NCBI GenBank assembly: GCA_028023455.1 | Contig: JAQFVV010000003.1 | Coordinates: 25,358,001-25,422,000, forward strand | DNA: 64,000 nucleotides | DNA from: Epiperipatus broadwayi | Taxonomy: Eukaryota > Animalia > Onychophora | Direction: 5' to 3' | In this document: in pieces, positions 3,521-49,760 of the stretch | Layout: each line of letters begins with the position of its first letter | Position numbering within the stretch: the stretch's first letter is position 1 | The notes under the pieces: generated by a model | What the model was told of the DNA's origin: nothing | The model's input: only the letters and a program-made list of their open reading frames with translations | Databases searched by the model: none | Position numbers and translations under genes: made by a program

Positions 3521-4754
3521 TAAAAAATAAAATTATAATTATTATAGAAATTCTGCCATGTATTATATACAATAAATAAATCATGAATTGTCATGATTTC
3601 TTACATCAATGTAAACTAATTCCTGGAATTACTACTAATCTGTTCTTACATGCTTAATAAATTGAATTGAATTTCAATAAAATCTAAATATAAACATTTA
3701 GAAACACTTATTATTTAACAAAAAATAATAAAAAAGATAAGGAGATTATATAAACTTATTTTGTTTTTAAAGCTAAATTAAGGGTAATATAGTGCAAGCT
3801 TATTAATATTTTTTCAACTCTATACAATATGAGCAGACTTATTGTTTCTGATTGGCTCCAAACTCTTTACCTCCAGTAGCTTCTGACAACTAGGTACTTT
3901 AATTAAAGCTAATAAATCACACAAAAATAAATCATTTTAAATTAAAATTTCTATCACTAACAGTTCATTGTGGATTTCTATTGATAACAATCATATATTA
4001 ATGATATATAGTACCAAACATAATTAATAACAAATTCTATATAATACATATTTTTAACACATATACTTATGACATAATTTAATTTAAAAATTGGTCTTAC
4101 TAAGATATCATTATGAATAACAATAAAAAAAAACATCACAGTACTGTAATAATTTGAAAAAAAAAAAAGAAAAAGACAGATTTATGTACTTATATACTTC
4201 AAACTAAGATGAATGTTTTTTTCTTTCATTGCTAAGTTAATTATTTTCATTTTCACTTAACACTTTGGTGTTATTTTAAATAAAAAAAATATTGATTAAT
4301 TTACAGCAATATCACTGTGAATGTAAATTAATATGTTCACTGTAATAGCAATCAGGTGACTGACTGACTGCACATTGAGTGTGTGTGTGTGGCGGGGTAA
4401 ATGTTGACAAAGAGATGATTAATGAAATAATGGTAGGTATGTGCAAAATTTTGAAATTTAAATTTACAGTTTTTTAAATTTTATTTTTTTAAATCATAGA
4501 TATACACCCATATGACTTTTATGTAATTATTACACTACCTATTTTATGTTCAATACATATTACATTTTTTAAGCATGTTATATATTAAATTGAAATGAAC
4601 CTCAGAATATTGCTATAGTGTATCTGTCATGTTATGTTCATGATTTGAATCTTGAGTAAACTTGGAAAGAAAATTTTCAGTTACATTTAGGCTTTTTTTT
4701 TCTTCAGGTTACCCTCCTATAGCCAATACACCTAATATTAGTTTCAGCATTATT

Positions 4755-6855
4755 TTCAACCATTATCAGTCCACAGCAGGATGAAGGTCTCTCCAAATTC
4801 AATCCATTTTCTTTGAACTCTGACCTCTCTTCTCCACATCACTTCTGCATATTTTCTTATTTCATCCATTTCACATGTGGTTCCAATCCCAGTTTAAGAT
4901 TTCAACTGTACATCTATTACCATCTTTTCTACTAATATGTCCAGACAACTCCACTTGTCTCTTAAATTCTTTCAATGATGCCAATAACACCAATTTGTTC
5001 TCTTATCCATGTATATCATTTTCAATTTCTTCTTGTTACTCTTGACATGCATCCATCCATACTTCTTTGAGTGGTCTGAAGTCTTTATATTGATTTTCTG
5101 TTAAATGTCCAAGTTTCAGATCCATAAGTAAGAACTAGTCAAACACATTTATTAAAAACCTTTCTTTTCAAATGTATACACATATTTCCTTTTAATATTA
5201 AGTTACTTCTACCAAAAATACCCCAACCAAGTTTGATTCTATGGTTAATGCCATCATGTATCCATTTGTAATAATAATCTGACCAAGGTATTTGTAGTTA
5301 CTAACTTCTTCTAACTCATCATTATCCATCTTTATTTTCATCTTTTGAAAAAAAATCCATTGAAATTTAATTTAGTTTTTTTTAACATTTACTTTTAATC
5401 CTACTTTCTTACTTTCATTTGATAATTCTTGCAATACTTCTTGAAGCTCTAAAGCATTATTTGCAAAAACAGTTATATCATCTGTAAAATCTAGATGATT
5501 TAAATAATCTACATTTACTTTTACTCCTTTGGCTTCCCATTTTAATTTACAAAATATTTCTGGCTTTTAGAACTGCTGTAAAAAGTTTTGAGAATCCCTG
5601 TCATACATTCTTTCAATATTAAGTTTCCTAGTATCATTATGAAATATCATAGTTGCTATTGCATTTTTATAAATATTCTTCAAAATAAGAATAGGTCTAC
5701 ATCCTGATGCTCCAATGCTTTAATCACTGAAGAAATGCTTATAGAATCAAACAAATGCCTTTTCATAAACTACAAATTCAAAAAATAATGCTAACTCATA
5801 TTCATTGGTTCTTTCTATAACTTCTCTTAATAATTCAATATGACCCACTGTACTAAAAAAAACATTTTTATTTTTTTAAGTTAAAATCTAAAGTTTCCTG
5901 TAGACAAGTTGTAATTATCTTTATAAAAATTTTGTATAGAAGTGATGAGATTCATAGGTGTGTAATTTTTAACATCTTTTTTAACACCTTTTTTGAACAT
6001 TAATATTAATACTGCATTCTTCCAATCATTTGATACATCTTTTTAACACCTGTTTTGAACATTAATATTAATATTGCATTCTTCCAATCATTTGGTACAT
6101 CTTCATCATTTAGGCATTTAGTATATAGCTTTACCAAAATTGTTCTATTTCTTGCTTCTTTTAAGATATTGATTATAATTCCACCATTACATGGATCTTT
6201 TCCCTTCTTCATAAATTTAATTACATGTCTCACTTCTTCACTTAAAATCTTGTGCAATTTAGAAGATATAGTAGTTGTAGGATCTTATTCTTTATTACTA
6301 TATAATTCTTGACAGAACTTTTCTATACATTTCATGATGCCATTTCACTTTTTAGTAATAGTTCCATCATTTTTTTTTATCCCAGAAATAAATTTCCTTC
6401 CACTACCAAGCTGTTGCTTTACACTCTTGAGACTTATTCTCTTTTATAGCTATCCTTGCTAGTTCGCAATTATATTTTTTTATATTGTTATCAGCTCCTT
6501 TTTGTCCTATTTTACAAATTCGAAATATTCAATCCTTTTTAACGCGTTTTTATATATTTCTATATTCCTTATTTTTTAATAAATTTTCTAGTCTCATTAA
6601 AAATTTACTGGTAAATTGCTATTTTTTTTATATGCCAGCTATCTTTATTGCAATTTTTTAAAGTGCACGAGTTGTCTTTTTAATGATTTCATTTAAATAT
6701 GAATCATTTTCAAAATCTGTTAATATTTGAAAACGATTTACTAGTTCTAATTTAAATTCATTGGAATGTTTCTGAAGATTAGGAATATCAGCTGTGAATA
6801 TAGTTTTTTTTAATAATTTCAGTCTCTAGTTTTGCATTAACATCTATCTTACATG
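4755..6855 (-). mobile_element. 5'-truncated, decayed RTE LINE copy (same family as 46164-49455)
   Basis: Collinear nucleotide similarity to 46175-48280, including the shared 3' end CATTATCA.TCCAC.GCAGGATGAAGGTCTCTCCAA. The ORF at 6006-6257 matches the 47054-47629 peptide. There is an internal ~60-bp tandem duplication near 5970-6100. Confidence 0.9.
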
Positions 6856-43200: not shown

Positions 43201-46174
43201 TAACTCTGAATTAGAGATTTAAAATATTTTAATGCAAAGATCTTCCAACTTTTATGATTGCATTTACTTCTCTCTGATAGCAACAATAAATGAAGCACAT
43301 CCTATAGCAAAAATGATATATTACCAAGCATTTGTAATAATATACACCTCACTAAAGTTTATGATGTCACTCTAAAATTGAGATGCTAGAAAAAAGTGAT
43401 AGCAGAGTGTCAAACAAGGGCTAGCCACAACTGATGATGATTAATATTAGTAGTTGATCTCCTAATAATTCTACTTGCTTCTGACAGAGAGTTGAATACT
43501 TAATATTTATTTATTTTTGTAAGATGCTCAAAAGTCACTTGACTTCCTAAGCAATTAACCAAGTATATATGTTAAAAAAAATTATTTATCTAACAACAAG
43601 TACCTGGGCAATGGCTTCGAGTATTACCAGTATAACCATTATGCTAATAGTCAACCAATCTACCCACAATGATGAGTAAATGTGGAAGCAATTAATTAGT
43701 AATATCTATTTACTGAAAGATGGACATTTTTTTTTTCTGAGTTGTTTATTTGTATGCTTGAATGTCACATGACTCCTTGAGCAACTAATTGTATGATAAA
43801 ATTGTAATCTACTTATATTCGCTACTCTTCTCCCAAAAAACATATATACATTTTTAGTTGCATGAGAAGTCATTTGGTATAAAATTGTCAAAGTATCAAA
43901 TTGAATGAATCAATTTCTTACAATTAATGAAATCAAGAATTTTTTTTTTTTTTTGCTTTTGTCAGTCAGGAATTGATCCAAGAAAGTCTGCTTCTTGAGT
44001 CTACAACTTTTACTATTAGGCTAAACATAATTTAAAAAAAAAAAAAATGTATGTAAATTTAAATGCATATAAACTCAAATATTTGTCAGAAAATTTATGA
44101 TAATGGCATTTTAATTGTAACTATTTTCATTTATTAAATGTTTTATAAAAATTCAGGTTTACTTTATTTCTTTTCAAATGTGATAACCTGTTAGTAATAA
44201 CACTCAAGTTAGTATATAATATAATGTTTTTAGTGGTACTATTCTTTTTTTCAGTTTAGCATGGAAATCAAAATAGTGAATTTAAGATAATGATGCAGTA
44301 ATCAATTATGCTATTCTCTCTAAGGCAATCATCTATACAAATTTTATATACTTGTCTATAAAGGTCTTTCTGGTTTATTAAGGCAAAATTAATGAGTGGT
44401 TTTAAAACATGAATAATCATACTATGTTTTATTATTGATTATTAGACAGTGTCACATGACAGCTTTTTAAATTTTTTAAAAATAAGTATATAGAAATAAT
44501 CCAATATATAATTGTAAGTCCAAATATATGCATAGTAATTTATAGATTTAAAAAAAATAAAATAAAAAAATACACAATTTATAAGTACTTGTGCACCATA
44601 CTTAAGGTTAATGCACTTATCACTGCAAGTACTTGTCACTCATGACTTAGAATTTAAACCTGAAATAAATCAAAGATTTTTGGGAAACTGAAGATTTTTC
44701 ATATAGACTGTTTTCTCAGGTAGCTAACATAATATCAACCTATACAGTCATCAACAATTGGTCAGAAAAGATATGCAGTAGCATTTCATAACTAAAACTA
44801 TAATCCCACTATTAGATGGATATTACTGTTAAGTGAATTACATTTTACAAATGCATATAACAACAAAGTGACATGTTACTACTATTATGCCAAGTGTAGC
44901 TGCAATAACAATCTTATTTTATTAACACAATTAATTAAACAAATAAACATTTAAAATAAAAAAATTAAATAAACCCATTAATATTAACTAATTTAAAAAT
45001 TAATATTTTGGTAAATATATATTTTTATATACAAATAGTAGATGTAGATGCTATTTTAAAATTATATGCAATGCATAATATAATTCTATAATATTTTGAA
45101 AAGTTTTCAAGAGAAAGGTTTGAAAATAGAACAACCTTTCAAAAAATGCACTTCCTATATTTTTTAAATCAGATTTTAAGAGTATATTGCTACCCGTCCT
45201 ACCAAGTAGCATGCATACACAATTTAAAAGCATGGCTTATATAAACGTTTCATTAAACAAACAGTTATTACTACAAGAATCTTGTATTTTGCTATTATTA
45301 GCTGCTGAGAAAAGTTTTAAAAAAATATAAAAATTCTTGTGAACTCTTAATGTCTACTTCTATAAATTAATATTTGTGGAATTATATTGGAAAGGCTTTT
45401 GATCTGTACACTCTCCTTCCACATTTTTTTTACAATGTTTATAAACTCCAGAAGACTCTTATGTTGATGTAATTAGTGTGCTATCCTTCTGTGCCTGTGC
45501 CATGAGTTTAAAATAGAAGTGAAGCTGAAAAATTTTCAAATAACTTGGCAGCAAAACTAAATTGAATATCAAATAAGGGGCAACAAATGAGGAATTAACT
45601 ATTAACAAATTGGTGTTGAGGAACATAAGCAAGAAATGATGGCAATCAGTTCCTGATATTTATTTATCCCTTTTAAAACTATCTATGAAGATATCAAAGA
45701 CCACTAACATATATATAAACACAGGAATTCAAATACATTAACATGTTTCTAACTTTTCTTATTTCCATCCTCTTTGCTTAATTATTTTATATCAATTGCA
45801 AACTGTTCTTTATTTTTTAATTTAGACTGTATGTTTTATATTCATGAATTAAAATAGGTCATTAGTGTAATTTTAGATTTGAAGCCTGGAGGTCTAAATG
45901 AATATTCTATATAAATATGCTCCTACAAATATCAAATAGTAATTAAAAATAAATTATGATTATATTATTTCAAGATCAGGTGGATTCATTTCACGGCGAG
46001 CTCCAAGGCAAATGATTATTTTGACTGATGATAGAAATCTGATAGAAATAAATACTGTAATATTCTTAATCCTTTATAGAAACACAGTTAATTTTAAATA
46101 AAAGACTACTGCATTGTGTTTAAGTATTGCATATGGCCATTGTAAGCTAAGTTTATGTAATGTCATCATCATCA

Positions 46175-49130
46175 TCAACCATTATCAATCCACTGCAGGA
46201 TGAAGGTCTCTCCAAGTTTAATCCATCTTCTCCAATCTTTAGCTTCTCTTCTCCACAACACTCCTGCACATTTTCTTATTTCATCCATCCATCTCACATG
46301 TGGTCTCTTTCTGGGTCTTTTACAATCTCTTGGAATCCAGTTTAAAATTTCAATTGTCCATCTATTATCATCTCTTCTAGCAATATGTCCAGCCCAACTC
46401 CATTTCAATCTTTTAATTTTTTCAATAAGGTCAGTAACACCTGTTTGTTGTCTTACCCATACATTGCGTTTTCGATCTCTTCTTGTTACTCCCAACATAC
46501 ATCTCTCCATACTCCTTTGAGTGGTTTGAAGTCTTTGTATTGCTCTTCTATTAAGTGTCCAAGTCTCAGATCCATAAGTAAGAACTGGTAAAACACATTT
46601 GTTAAAAACCATCCTTTTCAAACACATAGGCATATTTCCTTTTAGTATCAAGTTATTTCTACCAAAAGCACTCCAACCAAGTTTAATTCTATGATTAATT
46701 TCCTCCATTATGTTTCCATCTGTGTTAATAATCTGACCAAGGTATTTGTAACTGTTAACTTCTTCTAATTCTTCATAATCAATCTTTATTTTCATATTTT
46801 GAGCAAATCGATTAAACATTACTTTAGTCTTTTTAACATTTATCTTTAGTCCTACTTTCCTACTTTCATCTGATAACTCTTGCAACATTTCCTGCAGCTC
46901 TGAAGCATTATTTGCAAAAACAACTACATCATCTGTGAAATCTAAATGACTTAAATAATCTCCATTTACTTTCACTTCTTTAGTTTCCCATTTTAATCCA
47001 CAAAATACTTCTTGCAGCACTGCAGTAAAAAGTTTTGGAGATATGGAGTCACCTTATCTTACACCTTTCTCAATGTTGACTTTCCCAGTATCATTATGCA
47101 ATCTAATTGTTGCTGTTGCATTTTTATAAATATTCTTTAAAATATGACAATATCCTGGATCTATACCTTGATGATCCAATGCTTTAATCACTGAAGATAT
47201 GTGTATAGAATCAAATGCCTTTTCATAATCTACAAATCCAAAACATAATGATAACTCATATTCGTTTGTCCTTTCTATGACTTCTCTCAATACCTGGATA
47301 TGATCTATTGTACTAAAACCACTTTTAAATCCAGCTTGTTCTCTTGGTTGGTGGAAATCCAAAGTTCTCTGTAGACGAGTTGTAATTATCTTGGTAAAAA
47401 TTTTATATAAAACTGATAAAAGGCTGATAGGTCTGTAATTTCTAATATCTTCTTTATCACCTTTTTTAAATATTAATATTATTACTGCATTTTTCCAATC
47501 TTCTGGTACATCTTTACCATTTAGACATTTGGTATATAACTTTGCTAAAATTGTTTCTATTTTTTCACCTGCTTCTTTTAATATATCAATTATAATTCCA
47601 TCATTTCCTGGAGCCTTTCCTTTCTTCATACACTTAATTGCACTTCTTCATTTAAAATTCTGGGCAATTCGGAAGATGTAATAGATATAGGAGGTACTTG
47701 TTCTTTATTACTATATAATTCTTGATAAAAATCTTCTACCAATTTCATGATGTCATCTCTCTTTTTAGTAATAATTCCATCTTTTTTTTTTTATTATTGC
47801 AGATATAAATTTCCTACCAATACCAAAATGTTGTTTAACATTTTTGAGACTTTTATTTTCTTCTACAGCTTTCCTTGCTATTTCACAGTTATACTTTCTT
47901 ATATCATTTTCAACTCTTTTCCGTACCATTTTACAAAATTCGAGATATTCAATTTTTTTTAATACATCATTTTTGTATATCTTCATATTCCTTCTTTTCT
48001 TCATAAATTCTCTAGTCTCAGTAGAAATTTTATTACTCAATTGCTGCTTTTTTCTACCAGCTATGTTTGTTGCAGTTTTTAAAAGTGTATCAGTTATTTT
48101 CATATTAATTTCATTCAAATCTGTATCATGTTCAAAATCTCCTAACACTTGAAACCTATTTGTAAGTTCTAATTTAAATTCATTAGAATGTTTCTGAAGA
48201 TTAGGAATATCAACTGTAAATATTGTTTTTCTTAATAATTTTTGTCTTTCTAGTTTTACATTAACGTGTAACTTACACCTTACTAATCGATGATCACTTC
48301 CTGTGTTAAATTTATTAAGAACATTACAATCTTGAAATATGTATTTTCTGTTAGTCAAAATATAATCCAATTCTGCTGTACCTTCATTTGGATGCTTCCA
48401 TGTCCATTTCCTTTTAACATTTTTCTCAAAAAATGAATTCATAATATAAAGTTTTTCTTTTTCTGCAAACTCCACAAGTCTATGTCCTCTCTCATTTCTA
48501 TTACCATAACCAAAATTACCTACAGCAATTTCATCTTTCATTTGTCTACCAATTCTAGCATTAAAGTCTCCCATAACAATTTTAAAATGTTGTTTACTCT
48601 GATCAAAAGCCTTTTGTACATCCATATAAAAATCTTCTACTACTTCATCACTATGAGAACTTGTTGAGGCATAAACCTGAATTATCTGCATTTGGTATCT
48701 GCTATTAAGTTGTATAACTAATCTTGCCACTCTGTCCGATACACCATCAATCTCCACAATATTGTTCTTCCACTTTTTATTTATAATGAATCCTACTCCA
48801 CTTGTATTTCCAATATGTGTGCCTTTATAATAGAGTATATGTCCACTTTTTAAATCAATTGTTTCTTCTCCTTTTCTTCTAACTTCACAAAGTCCAATAA
48901 TGTCCCATTTAATATAAGACAGTTCTTCTTCTAATTCTTGCAATCTTCCTTCACTTGAAAGTGATCTGCAGTTGTAAGTACTCTAAATAAAAAGTCATCA
49001 TCAAATGGCAGCCTGGGTCCGCAATCAGGGGATTCTTAGCACCCTCCACCTTCGGCCACCAACTGCTGCCTTGGTTGGTGACTTTACAGCCTCCTGGGAA
49101 TAAGGACCATGCTTTATTTTTGTCTGTCAT
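46175..49130 (-). pseudogene. RTE APE endonuclease-reverse transcriptase ORF with frameshifts
   Basis: TYNCRSL...WDIIGLCEVRR, GDFNARIG, LDYIL, GSDHRLV (47765-48943). [27 protein letters not shown] (47054-47629). HLDFTDD, YKYLGQ (46175-47020). Confidence 0.92.
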
Positions 49131-49287
49131 AATTGTATATATGTATTGGAAAAATATTTATCATTTACACAAACATTCATTCTGCCTTATCAGGCACTGA
49201 GAAGAAAGACCATGGTGTTTCTTGATCTTAAACTCAGAGGAAAAAGCCAATAAACTCACCACACTGACTAATGCATGTTGGTGAGCA

Positions 49288-49455
49288 GCCCATCCATGTT
49301 CATATACTATATGAATAATCACATAGTAATAACAGCTGCAACGACAAGAACGTATGGAGTGGACATTAGGAATTTGCCCTGCTCGGTTCCTTTAAGGCCT
49401 CCAAGAGGAATCAAAGGGTCTCCTTTCAGTTAATAGCAAACTCCTTTCTGCAGCC
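49288..49455 (-). ncRNA. HDV/CPEB3-like self-cleaving ribozyme fold at the RTE 5' end (catalytic C position is U in this copy)
   Basis: P1 GGCUGCA/UGCAGCU with a G.U pair at the cleavage site. P3 ACG/CGU with L3 UUCUUGU, then GU after P1. P4 UACUAUGUGA/UCAUAUAGUA. J4/2 UGAAC. P2 UCCAU/AUGGA. A long J1/2 contains the hairpin AGGAGUUUGC/GCAAAUUCCU. G1 abuts the TSD. Confidence 0.8.
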
Positions 49456-49485
49456 TATGTAATGTACACACACACACATATATAT

Positions 49486-49760
49486 ATGTTCACTAGAGAG
49501 AGCTTACCAATAGCTCCAATCAAGCTTTAATTTATAAGTGCCGAAAAAGAAAGAATTCAAATTCTCTATGGAATGTCCTCATCCCCAGACCAATTGGTTT
49601 CGAGTTTATGACTTACCTCAGTGATGAGCTAGAACTCCAGACACTAGATAAGTGGTCTGGGGATGAGGACATTCTGATAGAGATTTTGATTTCTTTCTCT
49701 TTTGGCACTTATAAATTAAAGCTTGATTGGAGCTATTGGTAAGCTCCCTATAGTGAACAT
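49486..49760. repeat. Family C fold-back element (~107-bp arms) with a degenerate hammerhead at 49578-49628 (-)
   Basis: Arms are near-perfect reverse complements. Minus strand reads CUCAUCA-CUGAGGU-AAGU(CAUAA)ACUC-GAAA-CCAAUUGG-UC-UGGGGAUGAG. Confidence 0.7.

Follow-up and report, generated by a model that had tools for sequence, protein, structure and literature searches.

The first bases of a dead RTE retrotransposon in the window (the whole 64,000-nucleotide stretch of Epiperipatus broadwayi DNA that was analysed) are the relic of a real HDV-like ribozyme, which lies at the exact 5′ end of the element. That this is a decayed 5′ ribozyme of the retrotransposon, with a history of processing followed by decay, we consider very probable. 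As judged by covariance model matches, the window ribozyme is homologous to a conserved module in scorpion RTEs that consists of a ribozyme with a P1.2 domain.

The RTE element and the fold at its 5′ end

The element is an RTE-type non-LTR retrotransposon of 3292 bp on the minus strand (46164-49455), and its reading frame is broken. On the minus strand it starts with GGCTGCAG and ends with GATGATGATG. It is flanked by a perfect 10-mer target-site duplication, TATGTAATGT on the plus strand, whose two occurrences on that strand, at 46154-46163 and 49456-49465, are the only ones in the whole window. The boundary features are as follows.

49456-49465, minus strand: 5′ target-site duplication, an exact 10-mer reading ACATTACATA on the element strand
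46154-46163, minus strand: 3′ target-site duplication, an exact 10-mer directly 3′ of the GATGATGATG tail
46164-46180, minus strand: 3′ end, very short, with stop codons within the (TGA)n-like tandem tail

The APE endonuclease domain (47765-48943) and the RT domain (47054-47629 plus 46175-47020) lie in the same long frame. As in the RTE clade, Pfam Exo_endo_phos(_2) and RVT_1 share this one frame. In-frame stop codons interrupt it at seven places, six of them between 47650 and 47769 and the seventh at 47054-47056. The length of 3292 bp, the minimal 3′ UTR, the (TGA)n-like tail and the 10-bp duplication are all RTE traits; size, a single APE-plus-RT frame, a near-absent 3′ UTR and a tandem-repeat tail are what we take to define RTEs. 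The best protein matches of the element were RTE-like proteins named "craniofacial development protein 2-like" (55 to 63% identity), and no match above 63% identity was obtained in protein searches with the element. A second copy of the RTE in the window (4745-6853, minus strand) is 5′ truncated, beginning at about element base 1179, and is 79% identical; no other full-length copy was found in the window.

Two sequences upstream of the insertion were also observed. A microsatellite, (AT)n or (GT)n, directly precedes the window RTE (49466-49490), as one does a related copy in the scorpion Centruroides sculpturatus (L014 3848-3861). About 100 bp upstream of the insertion lies a near-perfect long inverted repeat (49560-49686), which microRNA-precursor models matched weakly (MIR7723 with E = 0.003, far from reaching its threshold) and which may be a small foldback element.

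All parts of the HDV double pseudoknot can be drawn in element bases 1-167 (49455-49289). The order expected of an HDV-like ribozyme, P1-J1/2-P2-P3-L3-P3′-P1′-J1/4-P4-J4/2-P2′, is present in the window copy. G1 (49455) is the first base of P1 as well as of the element, and it adjoins the duplication (49455/49456). The parts of the fold are listed here.

49449-49455, minus strand: P1 5′ strand GGCUGCA (element bases 1-7), in which G1 is the predicted cleavage-site base
49334-49340, minus strand: P1 3′ strand UGCAGCU (element bases 116-122), forming 7 bp with the 5′ strand
49363-49448, minus strand: J1/2, 86 nt, a structured P1.2-type peripheral domain (element bases 8-93)
49354-49362, minus strand: P2 5′ strand CCACUCCAU (element bases 94-102)
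49289-49297, minus strand: P2 3′ strand AUGGAUGGG (element bases 159-167)
49341-49353, minus strand: P3 (ACG/CGU) and L3 UUCUUGU, in which the L3 U..C..G pattern is kept
49332-49333, minus strand: J1/4 GU, of which the G pairs with the L3 C (one-pair P1.1); the second position is U.U
49303-49331, minus strand: P4 hairpin, A/U-rich (bases 125-153), with two pairs, a bulged U and ten pairs
49298-49302, minus strand: J4/2 UGAAC (bases 154-158), with U at the catalytic-C position 49302 and G as the next base

P1 is closed by a wobble between G1 (49455) and U122 (49334), which is invariant in all three sequences compared (the window copy and two scorpion copies). P2 is paired at seven of nine positions (five pairs, a 2x2 mismatch and two pairs). 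P1.1, between L3 and J1/4, has one standard pair in the window copy and two C-G pairs in the scorpions. J1/2 by itself folds to -29.5 kcal/mol (z = -3.2 against shuffles). The sequence-only reading had described the nested double-pseudoknot elements (P1 with its G.U pair, P2, P3 and L3, the GU, P4, and a J1/2 containing a hairpin), and each of its structural statements holds. It had also placed the predicted cleavage site at the 5′ end of the element, which the direct abutment of G1 on the duplication bears out, and had named a U at the catalytic-C position of J4/2, which is read off directly.

A descriptor containing all of these elements matched once in the window, both strands included, and the match was at G1 = 49455; it was obtained only when U was permitted at the catalytic place. 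In 150 dinucleotide-preserving shuffles it matched on average 0.127 times per window, a lenient figure because the descriptor was tuned after the candidate had been seen. A match precisely on the first base of the element is far beyond chance. The Rfam HDV-family models gave no match to the window copy at gathering score, and at E <= 10 they gave none on 701 bases or on the 106-base core. The Infernal search with HDV-like and CPEB3 models that had been proposed as a check was, for the window copy, negative. In those models the copy is penalised for the 86-nt length of J1/2, for its A/U-rich P4 and for the missing C.

Homologous folds and covariation in related RTEs

The nearest relatives of the element are RTEs of Centruroides vittatus (L001) and C. 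sculpturatus (L014), with 55% identity in the APE domain. R1, a covariance model made from the window copy alone, gave a full-length match in each: at 3877-3684 of the C. vittatus locus (60.3 bits, E about 1e-12) and at 3862-4039 of the C. sculpturatus locus, on the strand of the element (51.6 bits, E about 1e-10). Both matches begin exactly at base 1 of the related RTEs. In the C. sculpturatus copy, an (AT)n run is followed by G1 as the first element base. In the C. vittatus copy (L001 3584-3904), the first ~295 nt, ribozyme included, are inverted with respect to what follows, and this segment has G1 at its end. Given an RNA template starting at G1, this arrangement would be the expected product of a twin-priming-like 5′ inversion.

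Two details of the scorpion loci are recorded separately. At the C. vittatus junction, the first 12 bases recur two to three times as their reverse complement, with AGAT between the repeats. In the C. sculpturatus locus, the annotated protein P0003 has its ATG start within P4 of the ribozyme (L014 4001), which is probably a gene-model artefact.

MAFFT alone misaligned the core, and a model-based alignment of the window copy and the two scorpion copies was used instead. In this three-sequence alignment, 96.3% of cells were standard pairs. Of the 49 pairs, 24 differed on both sides between the window copy and the scorpion copies with pairing kept, compensatory change of the kind looked for in HDV-like ribozymes; this count covers two independent lineages only. 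As a control, partners were slid by 1 to 3 columns, which left 33 to 38% of cells paired and 1 to 4 double-sided changes. In P1, the long-range pseudoknot helix, five of seven pairs were exchanged (GGCUGCA/UGCAGCU versus GGUCCGC/GCGGACU) and G1.U was retained. Seven of the 11 pairs in the basal helix of P1.2 had changed on both sides, and one of the three P3 pairs was compensated. Because the alignment was fitted to the model, counts for P4 lean towards the structure, and the 3′ part of the C. sculpturatus copy is misaligned in it; the counts for P1 and P3 can be trusted because invariant neighbours anchor both helices. P2 is imperfect in both lineages (7/9 in the window, 6/9 in the scorpions).

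The internal loops of P1.2, AACUGRAAGGAGACCC and GGAACCG, are strongly conserved. A pattern scan of viral contigs with these motifs found nothing, and a single match of the P1.2-motif pattern in a bacterial coding region was rejected as chance. A metagenome scan with the core 22-mer likewise yielded no homologue: the nine contigs that matched it all did so in a conserved G+C-rich bacterial gene and were set aside as chance matches. Nine further RTE loci (L002, L003, L013, L015-L017 and L019-L021), which come from S. purpuratus, three ENA samples and GCA_009772475.1, had no R1 match and no credible descriptor hit near the RTE 5′ end; their few relaxed-descriptor hits all lay away from that end.

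A second structure in the 5′ UTR is shared more widely.

49254-49286, minus strand: conserved 5′-UTR hairpin directly 3′ of the ribozyme, common to RTEs from five sources
L014 4066-4099, L015 1736-1769, L003 3954-3986 and L019 344-377: homologues of this hairpin

The hairpin has 11 pairs, five of which show compensatory changes, and a nearly invariant CCA...CAGCGUGG. It is present regardless of which ribozyme-like motif lies 5′ of it.

In some of the RTE relatives, a twister-P1-like core (RF03160) was seen at 3657-3724 of L002 and 1666-1733 of L015, both on the plus strand (ENA sample ERZ25069412). It scored 30.8 bits where 67 are needed (E about 0.005) and has a conserved AAC.CCGC...CCGGUGCCAAGCCCGG...GGAGG. 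This core sits just 5′ of the conserved hairpin, in the slot that the HDV-like fold occupies in the window and the scorpions. Upstream of the motif, L002 and L015 have more than 200 nt in common, so that it lies at no obvious DNA boundary. In Schistosoma, non-LTR elements with twister variants have been reported (PMC8501958).

The catalytic position, CpG decay and alternative readings

The first position of J4/2, the equivalent of C75, is not cytosine in the window copy; U occupies 49302, and no alternative catalytic C fitting CNRA was found in this copy. The scorpion J4/2 is CCAAC, which corresponds to UGAAC in the window, so the relatives carry the cytosine that the window copy lacks. The Rfam drz-agam-1 model places the scorpion CCAA on the CuaA of that family, with the first C on the catalytic C. 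C75U is a mutation that blocks cleavage and was used in HDV crystal structures (PMC4227795). Since the catalytic C is absent, the window copy is a relic and not an active member of the HDV-like ribozymes, and it is predicted from its sequence to be unable to self-cleave. The earlier judgement that the ribozyme was ancestrally active and is dead in this copy appears sound in light of the scorpion fold with its compensatory changes, the starts at G1 and the C in the scorpion J4/2.

The window is 28.7% G+C, with a CpG observed/expected ratio of 0.29 and a TpG/CpA ratio of 1.22. The CpG ratio of the element is 0.21, and the TpG/CpA excess amounts to 1.22 to 1.26 across the two. The host genome is strongly depleted in CpG, for which methylation is presumably responsible. 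CpG decay is also well supported in the window copy, as the hairpin at 49286-49254 illustrates: the window copy reads CAGUGUGG and AUGC, versus CAGCGUGG and CCGC in four other RTE lineages. The sequence-only reading had ascribed the U at 49302 to CpG deamination, which is plausible given the CpG ratios of 0.29 and 0.21 and the presence of TG at CG sites that are invariant elsewhere. Deamination at a methylated CpG is the probable source of the C-to-U change; at this place the scorpion homologue has CC, not CG.

The history that we infer from the anatomy, the boundaries, the covariation, the C in the homologues and the CpG decay would run as follows. Transcription of a source copy of the RTE would have started upstream of it, presumably as read-through, and the RNA would have folded over its first ~167 nt into the HDV-type nested double pseudoknot, with the P1.2 domain in J1/2 holding P1 and P2 together. 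The RNA would then have cut itself just 5′ of G1, leaving a retrotransposition template that starts at G1, and full-length target-primed reverse transcription of this template would have left G1 adjoining the target-site duplication. After insertion, the cytosine at the catalytic place of J4/2 may have become U, other CpGs would have turned into TpG and the reading frame would have gained stops.

The fold could instead be a conserved, non-catalytic 5′-UTR structure that resembles the HDV topology, serving as a platform for translation initiation or for binding of the protein that the element encodes, with the 5′ end of the element set in another way. Every Rfam score is under threshold, as this reading would have it, and the strong conservation of the P1.2 loops suggests a role beyond that of a simple clamp. 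True HDV-like ribozymes, however, also have reported roles in translation or protein binding (PMC6765202), which makes a role of this kind compatible with catalysis. The G1.U wobble, the U..C..G of L3, P1.1 and the CNRA of the homologues' J4/2 all occur together, P1, the long-range pseudoknot helix, is compensated throughout, and three copies in three genomes terminate exactly at G1. These features make a purely non-catalytic structure improbable.

The U at 49302 might also be typical of a propagating subfamily that had spread with no functional ribozyme, and not a product of decay in the window copy. Methylated CpGs are mutational hot spots, at which independent C-to-T changes at one site are expected in DNA with a CpG ratio of 0.29, and the window copy is demonstrably decayed at other sites (stops, and TG at CG sites). 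Against that background we regard such a subfamily as distinctly improbable. An unlikely variant joins the two ideas: a propagating U subfamily would keep the HDV-like fold and the P1.2 loops for a non-catalytic job, in translation start or in binding the element's protein, and would no longer cleave. A chance resemblance to the HDV topology in an A/T-rich 5′ UTR, for which the 0.13 hits per window expected of a descriptor tuned on the candidate and the silence of Rfam on the window copy might speak, is hardly credible and is already contradicted by a descriptor match on the correct strand at exactly the base that the duplication defines and by recovery of the fold in scorpion RTEs at E about 1e-12 with 24 compensated pairs.

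Relation to known ribozymes and significance

A decayed ribozyme that would once have processed its RTE remains the preferred reading, and the window copy can be compared with several known systems. Ruminski, Webb, Riccitelli and Luptak described HDV-like ribozymes at the 5′ ends of RTEs in 2011, as cited in PMC3774820 and PMC6765202. As described there, the ribozymes of RTE and other non-LTR elements are alike in that the first bases of the element make up a nested double pseudoknot, the cleavage site is at the 5′ junction, and promoter-less elements are released from a co-transcript. The window family differs from them, by this comparison of descriptions only, in being undetected by Rfam and in having U at the catalytic C. 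The kind of pairing, a ribozyme with an RTE, has been known since 2009-2011, and the window copy is one more decayed member.

Among the ribozymes of Anopheles gambiae, drz-Agam-1 is the one to which the scorpion core can be aligned, over P2, P3, L3, P4 and J4/2. The scorpion core matched the Rfam model (drz-agam-1, RF01787) at 29.9 to 30.1 bits (E = 3e-4 in a 351-base search), below the gathering score of 37, and the window copy was without any score. The likeness to drz-Agam-2-1 lies in the long structured J1/2 (P1.2) domain (PMC4908430), and a structured J1/2-P1.2 domain is reported to make cleavage faster by bringing P1 and P2 together (PMC4908430). Unlike in the drz-Agam ribozymes, the P1.2 domain of the window copy is ~86 nt long and its internal-loop sequence is conserved across distant hosts.

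R2 ribozymes also have an HDV-like 5′ fold of ~180 nt with a large J1/2 and act in co-transcript processing (PMC3774820, PMC6765202). R2 is specific for 28S rDNA and its ribozyme often cleaves upstream of the junction, whereas the window RTE is a dispersed element whose fold begins at the junction.

The CPEB3 ribozyme is single-copy and intronic; its J1/2 is short and its catalytic C intact, in contrast with the window copy, on which the Rfam CPEB3 model gave no match. A likeness to mammalian CPEB3 presumably remains in an L3 of the UUCNNGU type, a J1/4 GU with a one-pair P1.1, and a J4/2 of NGAA.

Alone, the window copy is of little weight: the pairing of ribozyme and retrotransposon has already been described, and this is one more decayed example of it. 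The R1 covariance model recovers a ribozyme type undetected by Rfam across distant hosts, and the large P1.2 domain and the downstream 5′-UTR hairpin both provide evidence of conservation with covariation. The hint of a twister-like motif at the same place in related RTEs would bear on the exchange of 5′ processing modules between retrotransposons.
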